Shown: positions 1-54,785 of the stretch, piece after piece
How positions within the stretch are numbered: position 1 is the stretch's first letter
Layout of the letters: each line of letters starts with the position of its first letter
Source: Saccharolobus solfataricus P2
GTDB lineage: Archaea > Thermoproteota > Thermoprotei_A > Sulfolobales > Sulfolobaceae
DNA length: 64,000 nucleotides
Reading direction: 5' to 3' (one strand)
Assembly: GCF_000007005.1 (NCBI RefSeq)
Contig: NC_002754.1
Program-made: the position numbers and the translations under genes
The notes under the pieces: model-generated
Seen by the model: only the letters and a program-made list of their open reading frames with translations
Database searches by the model: none
What the model was told of the DNA's origin: nothing

Positions 1-102
1 GGCACCTAGGGGGAAGGACGTTAACGTTCAAGATGTTGATGTGGGTGATGTGCTGGACTCGTTGTCCCAGTAGGTTTGTTAGAGGCGGAGCATGTAGTGC
101 CT
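1..102 (+). mobile_element. 3' end of IS110-family element (ISC1491-like)
   Basis: Near-identical to 12385-12486 and to the reverse of 53157-53258; ends GTAGTGC-CT. Confidence 0.9.
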
Positions 103-2339: not shown

Positions 2340-2470
2340 GTAATATTCTCCTCAGCTGGGGAAAAATGGTCGAATGGGAAATTGAAGCAAAGTCTTCGGG
2401 CGAGGGCGTGACGAGCCCCTACAGTCGGACTGAACATTGTGAAAATATTCACGAATATAGGTGTGACACA
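2340..2470 (+). ncRNA. Candidate bridge RNA (target- and donor-binding loops)
   Basis: ACTGAAC (2429-2435) equals the right end; ATATAGG (2455-2461) complements the left end CCTATAT; GCGAGGG (2400-2406) complements the target flank CCCTCGC. Boundaries approximate. Confidence 0.8.
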
Positions 2471-3069
2471 AGCGTAGGGGTAATTGGAATAGACGTATCA
2501 AAAGAACACTTGGTAACAAGTAAGGGGAGGGTGAGAAAATTCACAAACAACGAGAAGGGCTACGAAGAAATACTAACCATGAAGCCAAACATCATCGTAA
2601 TAGAACCCACAGGAGTATACTCAACAAGACCTTGCCAATACTTCAAAGAAAGAGGAGTGAAAGTCCTACTAGTCAGCCTTGCTATGGAAAGAAAAGGACG
2701 TAAGGGGAAGAAAACAGATTTTTACGACGCAGAAAAACTTGAAAACATGGTAAATAAGTCTAGAGAATACGTTAACAACCCCTTGAAAGAGTTAGTATCA
2801 CTCTACCTCTTCATGAAGGATGTGCAAACGAAACAAGAGAACAGGTTAAGGAGAGCTCTCTTCCTCGTGAGCGACGAGGAGAAGTTGAGCGAGGAGAGAT
2901 TGGAGAAGTTCTCTAAGGGAGACTTCTCTGACGTAAAACTGTATCAACTGGAATACACTGGTACAGTACTACGTGAGATTCAAGTCCTAGCGAGGACACT
3001 AATTCAAACACGAGAAGAGTTGAAGGAGGTGAGGAAAATGATAGAGGGTAATGTGCCTCAAGACCACGT

Positions 3070-4118
3070 TAGTGTTTCCGAAAAGTTTATAGATTAGTAT
3101 TACCAGATTGAACTATGCAAGATTTGGTTCAAGCTTATAAGGAAGAGAAGAACGCGAGAATTAAGGAGAGGATTCTTGCGGTGAAGCTGCACGTAGTTGA
3201 TGGTAAATCGGAGAAAGAAGTTTCGAAAATGCTTAACAAGGGCTATTCCACGATAAAATTGTGGATTGGCAAGTACAAGAAAGAAGGTCTTGATGGACTA
3301 AAGGACAAGCCCAGATCAGGAAGACCCAGAAAAGTAGAAGAGGAAAAGATAAAACAAATTCTGGAAGATAAGCCCCAAAAATACGGAATACAACAAGAGT
3401 ACTGGACAATGAAAACACTCAAGATAGCACTACAAGAACAAGGAATAGAATACAAGAAATCCAGACTATACGAACTAGTCCACGAACTAGGATACAACCT
3501 AGTAAAACCCAGACCTACCAACATCCAAGCAGAAAAGGACAAGTGGGAAGATTTTAAAAAAAATAAAGAAATTGGAAAGAAAGGCACTATTCTTTCTAGA
3601 CGAGTGTAGGACAGTAATTAGCACGTCAATTAAGAAGGTTCTAGCTAAGGTTGGCAGTAAGCCCGTAATGCGCGTCAATATAGGTTTTTCCTCAATCTAT
3701 GTTATTCTAGCTATAAACGCTTGGACCGGCGAAGTAGTGGTTTCTCTTGCTAAAAGGCCTAACTCTGAATCCGTTAAGTATTTCTTGAGGTACTTTAAGA
3801 GGCGTGTGGGTAGTGGTAGGGTTTACATGGTCATGGATAATTACTCTCCTCACAAGACTAAGGGTACGCTTGAGGTTTGTCGCAGGAAGGGTATTCATCC
3901 CGTGTTTACTCCTCCTTACTCGCCTGAGCTTAATATGGCTGAGGCGGTCTTCAAGTCCCTCAAGAACTACATGAGCAATAAAATATTCTATACGATAGAA
4001 GACGTTAAAAACTGTATTAAACAGTTCTTTGAAGAAAATAAGTATAGATTTAATCTTAATGCAATAACATACCTAGGATTAGATAAAATTGAAGTCTAAG
4101 AACTTTCCGGAAATACTA
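3070..4118 (+). mobile_element. ISC1048-like IS630-family IS
   Basis: 1049 bp, TAGT..ACTA TIRs, GT duplication; HTH ORF 3115-3609 and DDE ORF 3572-4099 joined at an A-run. Confidence 0.9.
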
Positions 4119-4493
4119 GTGTTACTCACGATTTCCGGAATAGGGAAACTGGCAGCTGGGATTATAATTGGGATTGTGGGTGATATTAGGCGCTTCCCAA
4201 GACCTGAATCCTTCGTTGCTTATTGCGGTTTAGACCCGGTAGTTGAGAGGAGTGGTAGGATTGAGGTTAGAAAGGGTATCTCCAAGAGGGGTAACAAGTA
4301 TTTGCGTAGCTTGTTTTATTTCCTTGCCGAGACTCAATATTCGCGTAACCCTACTCTCCTTAAGCTCCACGAAGCTCACAAGGACAAACTGAAGGGTAGG
4401 AAACTGTACACTGCCTTAGCTAGGAAGTTGGCTAGGATAGTGTGGAGTGTTTGGTATAATAATAAGCCTTATGAGGTGAAGTGACCCTCCCCT

Positions 4494-9744: not shown

Positions 9745-10039
9745 GCGCATACAAGAATTTACTGCAAATTGGAATGCAAGTTTCTAGTGGAGCAAGAGGC
9801 TTTCTTATCTCTTTAGCTTTCAGAAATACGGACCCACAGAACAGTATTGAGATATGGTTTCCTATAGATGGATATCTTGACCTACAAAGAAACGAGAAAG
9901 GATATATAAGGAATGAGTACGTTTGCAGGATTTTAGAAACCAACCCATACGTTGCATCTCCTACGGGGAATTCACGCAAAACTAGAGAACGAGTAAAACC
10001 AAGTATTACAAGAGAAAAACAAATAAGCAAGAAAGAAGA

Positions 10040-10170
10040 AAACAACATAAGCCCAGTCGCAACATGGGGATAAAAACCCCATTAGATGAGGCTGGCTGTG
10101 AAGCCCCTAGAACGATCTAACAAGAGGGGACAAAACCCCGAGTAGGAGTGTGCAAGTAAATTTTTCTAGG
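10040..10170 (+). ncRNA. Candidate bridge RNA of ISC1491-like element
   Basis: Twin GGGGA-AAAA-CCCC hairpins; GTAGGAG (10142-10148) complements left end CTCCTAC. Boundaries approximate. Confidence 0.6.
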
Positions 10171-26531: not shown

Positions 26532-26708
26532 CTGGGGGTCGGACTTTCATTGAGATTTCATGAATTTGTATTCAACCCCTCGTCCTCATACCCCTTATTT
26601 TCCTCCCCATGCCGTCTACGGGACTAACTCCCTTCAAGGACATGAGGAGTTTCATCAGGTACCTTCCTCCCCCTCACATTGCTCACAGAGTTCATTGTGG
26701 CACCCTCT
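26532..26708 (-). mobile_element. Orphan tnpB 3' end / right end (IS607- or IS605-like)
   Basis: GC-rich island ending TGAAAGTCCGACCCCCAG, similar to 28416-28519. Confidence 0.5.
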
Positions 26709-32390: not shown

Positions 32391-32645
32391 GTGGGAATAC
32401 AAAATCAACTTATGGGATATATAGTCACAGTTGATGAAAGAGGAAGGATTGTAATACCGAAGGATATTAGAGAGAGGCTTAACTTGAAAGAAGGAAGTAA
32501 AGTTGAGATAAGTGTGGACGAAAAGGGAAGGATTATTATTATTGTAAGGAGGATAAGTGTGGACAATATTTATGGAATTGCAGGAAGGGAAAGAGTTAGT
32601 ATTGAGGAGATTGAGGAGGCTTTAGGATTTGAAGATAATGATTGA
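32391..32645 (+). CDS. vapB: AbrB-type VapB antitoxin
   Basis: VDERGRIVIPKDIRERLNLKEG; true start may be the ATG ~21 nt downstream. Confidence 0.9.
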   Translation: MGIQNQLMGYIVTVDERGRIVIPKDIRERLNLKEGSKVEISVDEKGRIIIIVRRISVDNIYGIAGRERVSIEEIEEALGFEDND

Positions 32646-33024
32646 TTCTAACGTATTTATCTATGTTCTATTTTCTGATCCATCCTATGGGGAAAGAGCT
32701 AAGGAGTTATTAAATAAGGCTGAAAATGAAGATGCTTATTCATCAACTCTCATAATTTCCCAAGTCCTTGCACACTTAGAGAGGAGGAGAAAATCTGAAA
32801 TTATCCCCGTTTTTATAAATTATATTCAACAATCTGGAATAAAAATATTAGAAACCAGGTGGGAAGACGTAATTGAAGCCATAAAGCTTTTGAGGAATAT
32901 GAATCTGAGCTATAATCTTTGGGATGATGCAATAATTTCAGCCCAAATAAAGAGGGAAAAGATAGACATAATTTTCTCTAACGATAAAGATTTCGACATT
33001 CTTCAAGTTAAAAGAGAATTCTAA
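32629..33024 (+). CDS. vapC: VapC PIN toxin
   Basis: MIDSNVF, WDDAII, SNDKDFD. Confidence 0.9.
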   Translation: MKIMIDSNVFIYVLFSDPSYGERAKELLNKAENEDAYSSTLIISQVLAHLERRRKSEIIPVFINYIQQSGIKILETRWEDVIEAIKLLRNMNLSYNLWDDAIISAQIKREKIDIIFSNDKDFDILQVKREF

Positions 33025-33061: not shown

Positions 33062-33244
33062 TAGTAGTTTTAGGAAATTCCCTTATTATAAAAAGTCAAA
33101 ATATTTATCCATGTATTTATAAATATCTTTCATTGTACTTCTTAATATTATAGCTTATCAATAAACATTTCTCATCTAACCGGAAAGATTTATTATATAT
33201 TTTTAATGTAACGTAAAAGTGTAACGATTTTCCTATAAATGCTA
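33062..33244. mobile_element. SM2-like MITE
   Basis: See 32135. Confidence 0.75.
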
Positions 33245-33760
33245 CCTGGAGAGGGCCAGGAAGCTGCTCTCCCTGGGGAGAACCAAGAGGAGGTTCGAGG
33301 GAAGGTGGACCAAGAAGAGAGGGGTCTCGCACTACGGGCTCAAGGCAGTGGCCATGATCTTCGTCTCCCTCTTCGTGAGGTCCATCACGGTGAAGCCAGC
33401 CAACTTCTCGGACAAGAGGTTCAAGTCACCGCTCAAGGGGATTAAGATCGCGGACAAGGGATTCTCTCCCTCCCCGACACAGCTCATAGCGCGGGAGAAG
33501 CCCTTCACTACCCTGAGGGCCCACGTGGAGTTCTTCGGCACCTACCTGAACGCGTTCTGGAGGCCCTACGGGACCACGACCTGGAGGAACGACGTCTTCC
33601 TTCACGTCCTGGGAGTGATCTACAACATCAAGATGTTCCTCGCGATCCAACGGAGGACTCCTCCAGGACGTAGAGCCGTTCAGCTCTGAGACGCGCCTCC
33701 TCGCGATCAGGCAACGCTATGCGCGATAGGTAAATCCTCTCGTCTTGATATTTTTCCATT
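33245..33760 (+). mobile_element. IS5-like transposase 3' fragment
   Basis: GC-rich; YGLKAV, IADKGF and RAHVE motifs. Confidence 0.55.
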
Positions 33761-33892
33761 ATAAAGTTTTTCTCGGTTATCCGGGTTTCACCCTTCTGGC
33801 AATATTAATATTTATCATTCTGTTTATCTATTCGTTCAGATAATTACATTCCGGACACTCTCACGTAAGGGATCTATAGTCTTTTTCTTAAT

Positions 33893-33959
33893 AGGCACTA
33901 CATGCTCCGCCTCTAACAAAGTGACCGTAGCAGATCGGGATTCTCTGCCACCGTAGGAG
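33893..33959 (-). mobile_element. 67-bp miniature IS110 (ISC1491-like ends)
   Basis: CT-CCTACGG left end, 30 unique bp, TTTGTTAGAGGCGGAGCATGTAGTGC-CT right end. Confidence 0.75.
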
Positions 33960-33989
33960 CTGCAAAGGGGACTAGAAGGGATTATCAAA

Positions 33990-36077
33990 CTTAGTGGGGA
34001 GATGCTGGAAAATGGATGTGCTTAGGACACTACTAGTTCAACCCAGCATCTCCCCAAAACATATTAGACAAAAAAAAGAATTATTAAAGATAAATGGATG
34101 TGCTTAGGACACTAAAAAGGAGGATCAGAAAGCTGATCGAAAAGAAGCCCAAGAACCTAAACGAAACCAAAGCAAGAGGAATATTACTATACTTGAAAGG
34201 AATGAACACTAGAAAAATAGCCAAGATACTACAAGTACACTTGAGCACAGTTTACAGATGGATCAACCAATTCGAGAAAGAAGGAGAGAAATGCCTATGC
34301 TACAAGAAGAGAAAAGGAAGAAACAAGAAGGTAGACGAAAAGGAGATAAAAGTAGAAGAACTTCAAGGTAAAAACATATGGGAAGCAAAGGCTTACATAG
34401 AGGAGAAGTTTCACGTTAAATTAAGCTATGTAACAGCTTGGAGAATAGCTAGAAAGAGATTGAAAATCCCCTACATAAAACCATATAACAAGAAGAGGCC
34501 CTTTAACGCAGATAACATCTTGAGGGAGAGGTTAAAGGGTGTTATTATACTTCGTCAGACTTTAAAGGGCAAGAAAACTTCACTCAGTATTGACGTCCAA
34601 AGGTTCACCGCACCTCTTCACACTATACGTAAGGTCATTTACTCTCTTGGATATGGAGCGTAGGAACCTCGTTGCATCCCACATTAAGGTCTCGAAGTCC
34701 GTGTAAATCTTCGAGTAGAGCCTTTTCTTGAGGACTGCCCACGGCCCCTCCGCCGGACTCTTATCCGGAGAGTAAGGCGGCAGATAAACAAACTCCACCC
34801 CATTTTCCTCAAGGAATTCCCTCACTTCATTACCGTGTATTCTAGCATTATCCATCACTATCACGGTCTTCTCGTCCTTTATTACCTTCCTCAAGTAGAG
34901 TATAATATCTTTTGAGTTCAGCGAGGGCTTCTTGTATGTCGAATAGGAGAAAGTTATTCCCTCTTTACTAATCGTTATCCCGCCTACTACTGCAAACCTC
35001 TTCCTCTTAGGGTTGACCTTTATCCCTCCTCCGACCTTCATCCAGCCTTTACCCTTGTTTATGTAGGACACGTACGACTCATCGAAGATGTGTACCTTGT
35101 ACCCTTCTCTTATTTTTTTAAAAGCTTCTCCCCTTGTTCCTTCACCCACCTTTCTACAGCGTTATCGTCTCTAACGTAAGTTCTCTTTCCTTTCTTGTAC
35201 TTGAAGCCTAACTTCTTGAGGACTGGGCTTAAACTCCTCGGGTTGTACTTTATCCCAAATTCCTTGTCAAGTATATACGCTATGAGCTTCAAGGTCCAGA
35301 AATCGTAGTTCAAGCCGAAATCTCTTGGGCTCTTTTCTAAGATTCGGACGAGCTTTTCCTCGTCCTTCAGTTTCGTGGGTCCCTTCCTCGGCTTAGCGCT
35401 CAGGTCACCTTTCCTCAACCACTTGTACACGGTAAAGATGGAGACGTCATACTTCTTGGCAACGTCCTTTATACTCATCCCGTTCCTCACATCTTTTACA
35501 GCGTTAATCCTCCTCTCTTCCTCTTGTTTCTTGTTGAGCCTTATACCGTGCATTCTGGATTTCGGCATAACAATTTAGTATTACTCATGAAATATAAATC
35601 TTGCTCTTTAAAGTCTGACGAAGTATAAGAAGGGTGTTAAGGTGTTTTTCACGGATGAGTCAGGTATTCATCACGATCCTTCCAAGGTTAGGAGATTGGG
35701 GTTGTATAATGTTCCCGTTGATTATCCCAGTAGGAAGCTTAATGTTCTCGCTTCTATTCCCTTGTTTGACGGTGTTCCTTGTTTCATGTTCACCTATTCC
35801 AATGTTAATTCCGAGATCTTTGCTGAGTTTCTTCGCTTGTTTAGGAATTCCGGTCCTATCGTGTTGATTCTTGATAATGCTAAGTTTCACAAGAATGCTT
35901 ATGTTTTCTCCGTTGCTTCTCAGCTCGGCATTACCTTGCTTTTCTTACCTCCGTATTCTCCGGATTTGAATCCGATTGAGTTGGTCTGGAAGGACTTGAA
36001 GCGCTGGGTTAATACTTATTATAATCTTGAGTACACTCTTGATTCGATGGAGGAGGAGTTCTATTATTTGTTTTTGA
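33990..36077 (+). mobile_element. IS630-family element split by a second IS630 and truncated by a MITE
   Basis: HTH ORF from 34094; FTDESG, ILDNAK, YSPDLNPIE ORF 35642-36121. Confidence 0.8.
34545..35628 (-). mobile_element. ISC1078-like IS630
   Basis: TIR TTATACTTCGTCAGACTTTAAAG; ORFs 35110-35568 and 34580-35149 overlapping at an A-run. Confidence 0.85.
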
Positions 36078-36405
36078 GGGAGTGTTCTCAAACAGTCATG
36101 AAATTCAAAAAACGTTTGTAAAAATATTGGAGTAGTATGGAAAAACGCTCGTTTAACGTTTAAGATATAGAAATTTGAACAAAGACATTATTTTAGAAAA
36201 GCTTATATGCAAGGCTTTTCGAGATCCATTCTAGTACTACCACAAAAAGATTTCATAACCCTCGCAAATAAACCTTTTTCAGAGGCCGTTTTTCACGTTC
36301 TAATTCCTTAGCTACATCTCAATTAAAACGATTAATTGTGAAAATTTCTAGTTTAATTTTATTTTACTATATAATATCGAATAAGATGACTGCATGAGAA
36401 CACTC
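36078..36405. mobile_element. 328-bp MITE, GGGAGTGTTCTCA TIRs
   Basis: Both TIRs present; partial copies at 4578, 6915, 29745, 38845, 50802. Confidence 0.75.
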
Positions 36406-37104: not shown

Positions 37105-38097
37105 ATGAGTAGTGAAAGATTGATTGACGAGATCTTAAAGAACCCACAGCTTATCTCAGCACTGGCCGATAAAGTTTATGAAAAATTAAAGGACGAGATT
37201 GTAATAAGAAAATTAGAGGAAAACACAAAGAGCATTCAAGCCCTACAAGAGGCTATAAAGAGACATGGGGATGCGATAGTTTCACTCCAAGAGGCTGTAA
37301 AGTCCTTACAAGAGGAGGTGAAGAGACAAGGTGAAGCCATTGTATCACTCCAGAAGACTGTTGAAAAACAAGGTGAAGCCATTGTATCACTCCAAGAAGA
37401 GGTGAAGAGACATGGGGATGCGATAGTTTCACTCCAAGAGGCTGTAAAGTCCTTACAAGAAGAGGTGAAGAGACAAGGTGAAGCCATTGTATCACTCCAG
37501 AAGACTGTTGAAAAACAAGGTGAAGCCATTGTATCACTCCAAGAAGAGGTGAAGAGACATGGGGATGCGATAGTTTCACTCCAAGAGGCTGTAAAGTCCT
37601 TACAAGAAGAGGTGAAGAGACAAGGTGAAGCCATTGTATCACTCCAAGAAGAGGTGAAAAAGCATTCTAAAGCTATTCTTAGGCTTGCTAAGAGTCAAAA
37701 AAGACTTTCGATTGAGTTGGGTAGTTTCACTTCGAGGGCTGGTAAGGGGTTGGAAAGAGCCATGCTAAAACTTTATAAAAAGTCTTTAGAATTGCACGGT
37801 GTAGATCCCAAGAGAGTTAAACATGGCAATATTGTCGATACTGTTGGTATCATAGAGAAGGGTAGGTCCTTTGAGGTTGACTTTTACGAAACTAACGACT
37901 ACATCTACGTTTTCGAGATAAAGAACTTCTCTGATAAGGACGTTATTGACCAAGTTTTCGTAAGGAAGAAGTTGTTCTCGGTCTTGTATAACAAGCCTCT
38001 AAAAGTATTTGTTGTTACTAATTACATAGAGAGGGATGTTAAGGAGAAGCTTGAAAAGGAGGGAGTAGAGATTATTGCCTCCCACGTTATTGACTAA
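37105..38097 (+). CDS. Coiled-coil PD-(D/E)XK nuclease (DUF3782/DUF1626-like)
   Basis: Heptad stalk followed by EVDFY..YVFEIKN. Confidence 0.8.
   Translation: MSSERLIDEILKNPQLISALADKVYEKLKDEIVIRKLEENTKSIQALQEAIKRHGDAIVSLQEAVKSLQEEVKRQGEAIVSLQKTVEKQGEAIVSLQEEVKRHGDAIVSLQEAVKSLQEEVKRQGEAIVSLQKTVEKQGEAIVSLQEEVKRHGDAIVSLQEAVKSLQEEVKRQGEAIVSLQEEVKKHSKAILRLAKSQKRLSIELGSFTSRAGKGLERAMLKLYKKSLELHGVDPKRVKHGNIVDTVGIIEKGRSFEVDFYETNDYIYVFEIKNFSDKDVIDQVFVRKKLFSVLYNKPLKVFVVTNYIERDVKEKLEKEGVEIIASHVID
37261..37655 (+). repeat. 147-bp (49-aa, 7-heptad) tandem repeat, about 2.7 copies
   Basis: AGACATGGGGATGCG at 37261, 37408 and 37555. Confidence 0.95.
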
Positions 38098-53074: not shown

Positions 53075-53156
53075 TTAGCTAAAAATAAACTAACTGCGTC
53101 ACTATTGAGTTAAATACTCAGAGATTCATAAGTGTTGTTATAGTCTTTTTCTTAAT

Positions 53157-54629
53157 AGGCACTACATGCTCCGCCTCTAACAAACCTACTGGGACAACGA
53201 GTCCAGCACATCACCCACATCAACATCTTGAACGTTAACGTCCTTCCCCCTAGGTGCCCTAAAACTCTTCTTAACATCGCCCTTGTAAACACCATCCTTT
53301 ATAACGTGATAACAAATACAAGCAAGCTTCCCACCAAGAGCACAAGTTTAGTAGCACTCTTCCACCTGGAGACAAGCCTATCGTAATACTCCTTAAAACG
53401 TTCAGACTTCCTAGCAACCCTAGCAACCAAGAAAAAAGCCCTACGCAAATACTTATTACCCCTAATCATACCAGAGTGAGACTCGCTCCCACCACTCTGC
53501 TTAGTCCTGGGAGCAAAACCAGCATAAGCCCTAGCCTTAGAACTGGAAAAACGAGAAACATCACCGAACTCAGCGTAAATGGTTGCAGCACTAATCAAAC
53601 CAACTCCCGGCTCAACTCGACCACAGGCTGAGGAATCTTAGAAATTATCATGTCCTCAACTTCCTTAACCATAGCCTCCAAGCTCTTCAGTAAGTCTACC
53701 AGCTGCTTCAAAGCTAGCTTCTCAGCATCATTCAAACTTCTCCCTAACTTCTCCTTCAACTCGTCCCTTTCCTCCTTGCTCAGCCCTTCTCCCCTACTTA
53801 ACTTCTCCAGCAACGCCATTCCCCTCTTATCAAAGGGCTCTATCTTGTATCCCGCCATTTCTAGAAACTTCCTTATCTCGTTCTTTACTTGTGTTATCTT
53901 CCTCATCAAGCTCTCCCTATACCTCGTTAACTCCCTCAATTCCCTTATTTCCCCGGTCGGTATGTATGACCCCTTAACTGCTCCCAGGATGAAGGCTTTT
54001 GCCAGTCTTTGCGCGTCTAGCTTGTCGGTCTTCTTTCCGAATACTTCCTTCAAGTGTAAGGGATTTATTAATGTTACCTTATATCCCTTTTCTGTTAGTT
54101 CTTCGTGTAGGTAGAAGAAGTACGGTCCGGTTGACTCCATTATCCCTTCCTTATATTCGCCAAGGAATTTGATTAGTTCTTCTATTCCCTCGTTGTCGTA
54201 CTTGAATTCCCTCACCTCGTTGACCTCTACTTCCCTTTTCTCTTGCGTTATTACAAGTTCAGCTTTCGCTACCGTCAACTTGTCCCTTGAAACGTCTATT
54301 GCGAAACCCCTTGTCTTAATCTCACTTTCCATGATAGAATATTGCTCGTGTATGCGAGATATTCTTTACTATCATAATACCACGTTTTTCTCGCATAATA
54401 TTAACTACCTTCAGCCCCTAGAAAAATTTACTTGCGCACTCCTACTCGGGGTTTTGTCCCCTCTTGTTAGATCGTTCTAGGGGCTTCACAGCCAGCCTAT
54501 TATCTGGGGTTTTTATCCCCATGTTGCGACTGGGCTTATGTTGTTTTTCTCCTTCCTTGCTTATTTGTTTTTCTCTTGTAATACTTGGTTTTACTAGTTC
54601 TCTAGTTTTGCGTGAATTCCCCGTAGGAG
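53157..54629 (-). mobile_element. ISC1491-like IS110, full length, frameshifted
   Basis: 1473 bp between CT cores; ORFs 53595-54332 and 53299-53598. Confidence 0.9.
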
Positions 54630-54785
54630 TTGTAAAGAAGTAAAAAGGACTATTAACTGAGGGAATGCTAGGAATTGCTGAGTTAAGGATTTAACTGGCT
54701 ATATTTTGTATTGACAAAAGCTAATTCTCTTCGCATCTACTAAGAAAAAGACTATATAAATAAATATCATAATTAGAACTACGTT

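Follow-up and report, generated by a model that had tools for sequence, protein, structure and literature searches.

The sequence at positions 33893..33959 on the minus strand of a 64,000-nucleotide stretch of the Saccharolobus solfataricus P2 genome (AE006641.1 1,550,001-1,614,000; hereafter the window) raises the question of whether an insertion sequence pared down to its two ends can have moved as a unit. A sequence-only reading had described these 67 bp as a non-autonomous IS110 miniature mobilised in trans. We compared the miniature with its parent element, with the repeats that host it and with a second copy at another site. The comparison indicates that its 65-bp unit is probably a non-autonomous derivative of the RNA-guided IS110-family element ISC1491, mobilised in trans.

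On the minus strand, the miniature reads CTCCTACGG-TGGCAGAGAATCCCGATCTGCTACGGTCAC-TTTGTTAGAGGCGGAGCATGTAGTGCCT and consists of 63 bp with a CT core on each side, corresponding to a mobile unit of 65 bp. Its layout is CT-CCTACGG / TGGCAGAGAATCCCGATCTGCTACGGTCAC / TTTGTTAGAGGCGGAGCATGTAGTGC-CT. The left end (33951..33959, minus strand) comprises the CT core and CCTACGG and is identical at 9/9 positions to ISC1491 copies A and C. The 9-mer CTCCTACGG occurs three times in the 64 kb, every time as an ISC1491 left end. The right end (33893..33920, minus strand) is made up of the last 26 bp of ISC1491 and the CT core, with 28/28 matches to copies A, B and C. This agrees with the earlier description of 9 bp of left end, 30 bp of other sequence and 28 bp of right end between CT cores. 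When the two ends are combined into a gapped pattern, the miniature is the sole match in the window, with 0 matches expected from shuffled sequences. Similarity at the right end begins 1 base past the stop codon of the transposase, and the miniature thus retains nearly all of the non-coding right end but none of the coding sequence.

The 30 bases in the middle (33921..33950, minus strand) do not derive from any known ISC1491 sequence. A search for their source in the window, in five ISC1491 relatives and in one ISC1190-like element returned no match above shuffles. They had been called a unique hairpin, but the hairpin does not rise above shuffled sequence. As DNA, the whole element folds with a z-score of -0.7 and the 30-mer with one of -1.1; 49/200 and 33/200 shuffles, respectively, fold equally well or better. 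Within the 30-mer, a second, imperfect left terminus with its own CT (CTGCTACGGT, 33924..33933, minus strand) is present. Its sequence CTGCTACGG matches CTCCTACGG at 8/9 positions, a score reached by 0.4% of shuffles (p ~0.004). The termini of the miniature, CTCCTACGG... and ...GTAGTGCCT, form no inverted repeats. At the Rfam gathering score nothing was detected in the miniature, and the 30 bases between its end boxes contain no sRNA gene. As previously read, neither a transposase gene nor a guide RNA is encoded: the miniature measures 67 bp, whereas the two-loop RNA region of ISC1491 alone spans ~130 nt. Without room for either component, any movement of the miniature had to be in trans.

The parent element ISC1491 is represented in the window by a full-length copy A (53157..54629, minus strand; 1473 bp with both cores), by copy C (9958..12486, plus strand), which is split by a 1050-bp ISC1048-like IS at 10483..11532, and by the right end of copy B (1..102, plus strand), which is cut by the window edge. 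One source names the product 'First ORF in transposon ISC1491', and we found no mention of ISC1491 in the literature searched. A conserved stretch of 18 bp follows each copy on its right; the sum of 1473+18 = 1491 bp may be the origin of the element's name.

Structurally, the 297-nt left end of ISC1491 folds far below shuffled sequences (z = -3.8). Two stem-loops with large internal loops are conserved in relatives from S. shibatae, S. islandicus, S. tokodaii, S. tengchongensis and metagenomes. In copy A, the target-binding stem-loop is located at 54490..54536 (minus strand), with the loop strands AGUCGCAACAU and AGAUAAUAGG, and the donor-binding stem-loop at 54414..54484 (minus strand), with the 3' strand GAGUAGGAG. 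Both strands of the target loop vary between variants, together with the flanks. The reverse complements of the 3' strand read CTATTA, CTTTTG, CTATAT, CTCGTGA, CTTGTAC and CTTAT in six variants, and each of them matches the core and right flank of its own variant. The 5' strand matches the left flank and core, as exemplified by UGUCCUCC versus TGTCCTCC. The bridge RNA of IS621 has the same target-loop arrangement (PMC11208160). The donor-loop 3' strand, in turn, covaries with the left end of the element, pairing GUAGGAG with CTCCTAC and, in S. tokodaii, GUGGGAG with CTCCCAC. At the level of sequence, the covariation of the loops with flanks and left end across six variants establishes ISC1491 as a bridge-RNA element. 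The left end of the miniature retains CT+CCTAC, the partner of the donor-loop 3' strand (GUAGGAG).

A 5'-strand donor guide of the IS621 type for the right terminus was not found in the ISC1491 RNA, where CGAUCUAACAAGA shows no match to GTAGTGC-CT. The donor-loop 5' strand UCUAACAA is complementary to TTGTTAGA, which lies 19-26 nt inside the right end, and is not same-sense to the terminus. The right-end block of the miniature begins 1 base ahead of TTGTTAGA. In relatives whose donor loop and right end are intact, with protein identities as low as 54%, neither UCUAACAA nor TTGTTAGA varies, and covariation therefore cannot test this pairing. The location of TTTGTTAGA is also that expected of the archaeal TATA box of a junction promoter.

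The 3' target-loop strand of copy C, AUUAGAUGAGG (10080..10100), differs from that of copy A, AGAUAAUAGG (54496..54505), and has no match to copy C's own right flank; either copy C was inserted by the RNA of another copy, or its loop drifted after insertion. Compared to its sister copies, S. shibatae copy 2 (L007 7593..7615) has three additional bases, CCT, where the guide-matching left flank meets the left end. The same extra CCT is present in one S. tokodaii copy (L010 2700..2715, compared to L011), which suggests slippage among CCT/CT repeats at the crossover.

All insertions of the P2 type follow the consensus T(T/C)(G/A)CA(A/G/T)-CT-A(T/A/C)TA(A/T)(G/C)AAAAA(G/C)A(C/-)TA(T/G)A. This consensus extends further than the guides account for and corresponds to the terminal inverted repeat of an ISC1395-like element of the IS630 family. 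An intact IS630-family element of S. islandicus (L009) possesses the repeat pair CTATAGTCTTTTTCATAATAGCTTCAACGG / CCGTTGCAGATATTATGAAAAAGACTATAG, and its transposase has a relative (P0037; 86% identity) that bears the annotation ISC1395. No P2 copies were among the results of a search for transposases of this type, and when the ISC1395-like ORF and ISC1491 ORF2 were looked up, the window's own locus was the only match.

The host of the miniature is a decayed ISC1395-like IS630-family element at 33875..36170 (plus strand; right end approximate), whose left repeat the miniature occupies. The two halves of the host gene (34094..34663 and 35642..36121, plus strand) are separated by a second IS630-type element, whose repeats lie at 34542..34574 and 35599..35631, and the host ORF at 34094..34663 shares 65% identity with the IS630-family transposase of S. 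islandicus. The left half of the target, TTTGCAG (33960..33966, minus strand), belongs to the inner part of the host repeat and partially matches the loop 5' strand UCGCAAC. The right half, ATTAAGAAAAAGACTATA (33875..33892, minus strand), constitutes the outer 18 bp of the repeat, within which CTATTA matches the loop 3' strand. The flanks are as previously assigned, reading TTTGCAG-CT on one side and CT-ATTAAG on the other. The same 18 bp also flank copy A, which occupies one repeat of a ~145-bp MITE of ISC1395 type (53139..53156 + 54630..54756). The other repeat of this MITE contains an unoccupied target, TTCGCAT-CT-ACTAAGAAAAAGACTATA (54730..54756, plus strand), and a homologous, uninterrupted repeat is present in S. 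islandicus L009. The miniature is oriented relative to the host repeat as copies A, B and C are.

On the question of other copies, which the sequence-only reading had proposed as a check, the analysis yielded a second site. An exact copy (67/67) is located at ~2,318,733 of the 98/2-lineage genome CP033235.1 (18121..18187 of L021, the stretch CP033235.1 2,300,613-2,321,578). The same genome also holds site 1 at ~2,352,583 (L024), ~34 kb from site 2. Site 2 recurs in the 98/2 draft assembly, and contigs built from independent runs contain it too. Several of these contigs end exactly 30 bases into the miniature, probably at the point where a 31-mer assembly graph met more than one left context. 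With a second copy at a different site, the miniature is not the single-copy sequence that an in situ deletion had been said to explain better.

At both sites, an ISC1395-like IS630 element hosts the miniature in its terminal inverted repeat; the orientation is that of full-length ISC1491, and the arrangement is flank-CT-element-CT-flank with no further target duplication. When the two sites are aligned, 95/132 positions match in the inner host sequence, 16/18 in the outer repeat and 67/67 in the miniature. The host flanks together are 111/150 = 74% identical, and past the repeat terminus the two sites share no similarity. At a flank identity of 74%, the probability of 67 consecutive matches is ~2e-9. 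Nearest to the cores, the flanks diverge at the -1 position of the left side (G versus A) and at positions +2 and +5 of the right side. Site 1 (TTGCAGC) agrees with the 5' strand of the target loop at 5/7 positions and site 2 (TTGCAAC) at 6/7, the best fit, and the right halves CTATTA and CTA-TAT match the 3' strand. At site 2, a full-length ISC1491 follows 271 bp downstream of the miniature in the same orientation; the two elements reside in different host repeats, and neither shares its CT cores or target halves with the other.

The distribution of the two sites was assessed in stretches of S. solfataricus genomes rather than in a whole-genome census, and in this sample two sites are known. 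The orthologous regions of four further S. solfataricus genomes were reached via neighbouring proteins, and in P1, CP033235.1, CP160827.2 and CP050869.1 site 1 is occupied as in P2, with identical flanks. No empty orthologous allele was seen, as all five genomes carry the miniature at site 1 and the region of site 2 is specific to the 98/2 lineage. The stand-ins for an empty site are paralogous, uninterrupted repeats only. These contain a single dinucleotide, which is CT at 54730..54756 of the window and at L009 1487..1516, and AT at L009 2664..2693. Exact-pattern scans of species-representative genomes with a unique 25-mer and with the right end gave no match; the right end occurs 4x in the window yet is unmatched there, so this collection holds no P2-type ISC1491 and the scan is uninformative. 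No match to the 25-mer or to the gapped two-end pattern was found in metagenomes, and no copy was detected in viral contigs (pattern scan) or in plasmids and phages (blastn). As these collections likewise hold no P2-type ISC1491, their negative results are weak evidence; the ISC1491 relatives in JGI data reach at most 76% identity.

Several routes could have led to the same 67 bp at two sites. We considered whether the miniature was inserted once into an ISC1395-like element or MITE, which then transposed or was duplicated with its passenger. Both copies do sit at the same position of the same type of host repeat, and the host family is itself mobile. Set against this are the 74% identity of the host sequence (111/150) beside the 67/67 of the miniature, and differences that start 1 base from the left core and 2 bases from the right core. 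The 63-bp insert may otherwise have been copied between host repeats by gene conversion or by ectopic homologous repair, without the IS110 machinery, and the homologous host repeats would have offered a template. Such copying would need both tract ends to fall within 1-2 bp of the CT cores, in flanks that offer 72% homology with gaps on one side and only 18 bp on the other. The abrupt step from 100% to 74% identity at the cores argues against both hitch-hiking with the host, which is disfavoured and in our view very unlikely, and gene conversion, to which we give just as little credence.

The miniature may alternatively be an immobile relic of a full-length ISC1491 that was inserted at site 1 and suffered an internal deletion in situ. 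Its fixation at site 1 in all five S. solfataricus genomes and the lack of a further copy in metagenomes, viral contigs, plasmids and phages would suit such a relic, although the negative searches covered collections without any P2-type ISC1491. The same 30 foreign bases and the same breakpoints recur at two sites, which this explanation does not account for and which excludes independent in situ deletions. Site 2 thereby refutes the relic as a full account, which we deem highly improbable; it must still describe the origin of the first copy. In a further scenario, the miniature never moved alone and was carried in a larger composite circle, for example with its left end joined to the right end of a neighbouring full-length ISC1491, to be trimmed later. 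The full-length ISC1491 271 bp downstream at site 2, in the same orientation, and the ability of ISPpu9 to form circles from mixed end combinations speak in its favour. A composite circle of this kind is nevertheless not favoured and seems very unlikely, because the two site-2 elements lie in separate host repeats with their own pairs of CT cores and target halves. Moreover, trimming to an identical 67 bp is not expected, and site 1 has the miniature without a full-length copy nearby.

Mobilisation in trans, the claim that the exact second copy within diverged flanks supports, thus appears to be the best reading. Judged from the aligned sites, the unit appears to have been inserted at least twice, or once after having arisen at the other site, through core-to-core recombination of the ISC1491 type. 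We postulate that the miniature arose once, by loss of the sequence between left-end base 9 and the non-coding right end, with 30 foreign bases filling the gap. It would then have moved at least once as a unit, by means of the recombinase and bridge RNA of a full-length ISC1491 elsewhere. We infer that RNA and enzyme must have been supplied by a full-length element of the copy A type. The donor loop of the ISC1491 RNA would still read the ends of the miniature, and the target loop would direct it, like the full-length copies, to the terminal inverted repeats of ISC1395-like IS630 elements, where the exchange would take place at the CT core.

Along the likeliest route, the donor loop would guide the release of a small single-stranded circle, which the target loop would then direct into a repeat of ISC1395 type. 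A duplex circle of 65 bp is mechanically very unfavourable, in contrast to a single-stranded circle of 65 nt. Synapsis of both ends is likewise difficult for duplex DNA as short as this. The implausibility of the 65-bp double-stranded circle makes a single-stranded circle the likelier intermediate. When an IS110 element is excised, its two ends become linked at the CT core, and on insertion strands are exchanged at the target CT (PMC13626964). IS621 needs no more than recognition of its donor arms to be excised, and a cell-free system yields mainly a single-stranded circle (bioRxiv 10.64898/2026.08.31.748434). The ends of the IS110 element ISPpu9 are usable in mixed combinations, and a gene-poor module uses its transposase in trans (PMC12288879). 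More tentatively, it is conceivable that bridge recombinases of archaea, as well as IS621 of E. coli, can transpose via a single-stranded circle of at most 65 nt or by another non-duplex route.

The present state of the presumed helper bears on whether the miniature can still move. Copies A and C and the ISC1491 copy of 98/2, the three copies sampled, share a 7-bp deletion (CAAGATT) that splits the ORF. It is located at 53603..53618 in copy A, at 12021..12036 in copy C and at ~19560 of L021 in the 98/2 copy. The reference for this deletion is the intact transposase gene of S. shibatae, which encodes 385 aa. A protein search found no intact ISC1491 transposase of S. solfataricus. The three frameshifted copies occupy three different sites, which leaves two options: the split form is functional, or the copies too were mobilised in trans. 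With the local ISC1491 copies frameshifted, the miniature is probably now immobile and stranded. MITEs of other types lie close by: one of ISC1395 type hosts copy A, and one of ISC1048 type, 79 bp in length (L021 18984..19062), interrupts the 98/2 ISC1491. The repeats of the latter resemble those of the 1050-bp IS in copy C, and both insertions interrupt the transposase gene at an identical position.

The Sulfolobus MITEs SM1-SM4 and SMN1 were reportedly described by Redder et al. in 2001. To our knowledge, the Sulfolobus MITEs all derive from families other than that of ISC1491. SM1-SM4 and SMN1, which are cited in PMC3718332, resemble the miniature in being short, gene-less derivatives of IS elements from the same genomes that use a transposase in trans. 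In contrast to the miniature, which has CT cores and no inverted repeats, they have terminal inverted repeats and target duplications. Furthermore, they originate from DDE families such as ISC1048, ISC1058, ISC1217, ISC1173 and ISC1733, whereas the miniature originates from an RNA-guided IS110 element. The miniature is thus MITE-like, being tiny and non-autonomous, but not a strict MITE, as it lacks inverted repeats and a target duplication of the DDE type.

The closest precedent is MITEPpu9, the ssr9 module of the IS110 element ISPpu9 in Pseudomonas putida KT2440 (PMC12288879). Like the miniature, MITEPpu9 is bounded by the left and right end boxes of its parent and has a conserved core dinucleotide; it likewise exists in several copies, uses a repeated genomic target and depends on the parent's transposase (PMC12288879). 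It differs in carrying an sRNA gene with its own promoter, in being far larger and in forming circles that were observed experimentally (PMC12288879). The miniature, in comparison, measures 65 bp, is gene-less and archaeal, occurs at two sites only and was read from sequence alone. Non-autonomous derivatives of RNA-guided IS110 elements are barely described, and MITEPpu9, with its sRNA gene, is the only one that we found. We know of no archaeal non-autonomous IS110 derivative.

The choice of target has a parallel in IS4321 and IS5075 of the IS1111 group, which target the inverted repeats of Tn21-family transposons. They share with ISC1491 and its miniature the use of one fixed position and orientation within the terminal inverted repeats of a foreign transposon family, but belong to a different subgroup and host domain and have a different target family. 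We are aware of no miniature derivative of IS4321 or IS5075. ISC1491 and its miniature, at home in the repeat of another transposon family, make up a layered parasite-on-parasite arrangement in the IS-rich genome of S. solfataricus.

With respect to its ends, the miniature resembles the minimal donors of IS621, for which few bases on each side of the CT core suffice (PMC11208160, PMC11208158). The donor-loop 3' strand of IS621 pairs with the core and 2-5 left-end bases, corresponding here to CT+CCTAC (PMC11208160, PMC11208158). Unlike IS621, ISC1491 shows no canonical 5'-strand guide for the right terminus. Furthermore, the IS621 minimal donors are laboratory plasmid constructs, whereas the miniature is a natural element reduced to its recognition ends. 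Pared to the bases read by the bridge RNA and a short right end, it sets natural upper bounds for a working donor, namely 7 bp next to the left core and 26 bp next to the right core. The expectation that it would define the minimal donor ends is thereby borne out for these upper bounds (<=7 bp left, <=26 bp right) and not for the true minimum. The length of the miniature also bears on the live question of whether IS110-type elements exit as double- or single-stranded circles. If the 65-base unit truly transposes, it would place a natural constraint on the IS110 intermediate and would be the smallest natural donor for this class of enzyme.

Beyond the ISC1491 copies, the window contains two further IS110-family elements, both distant, at 20400..21800 (minus strand) and 2366..4330, with transposases that are 36% and 28% identical, respectively. 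The former is intact (316 aa), and one of its relatives abuts the truncated right end of an ISC1491-like element in S. islandicus. A type III Cmr module with RAMP and Cas10/Cmr2 proteins spans 13917..20360 and includes an ORF with a DDE_Tnp_2 transposase domain. Between a VapBC pair (32391..33024) and the miniature, a G+C-rich region with overlapping ORFs on both strands extends over 33100..33760; atypical for a genome of 37% G+C, it may be a decayed foreign gene. The sole match in the window at the Rfam gathering score is the sRNA Sso133 at 26603..26665. Downstream of the host element, 37105..38097 encodes a coiled-coil protein of long tandem repeats. Its length is 330 aa in P2, compared to 323 aa in both P1 and the 98/2 lineage.
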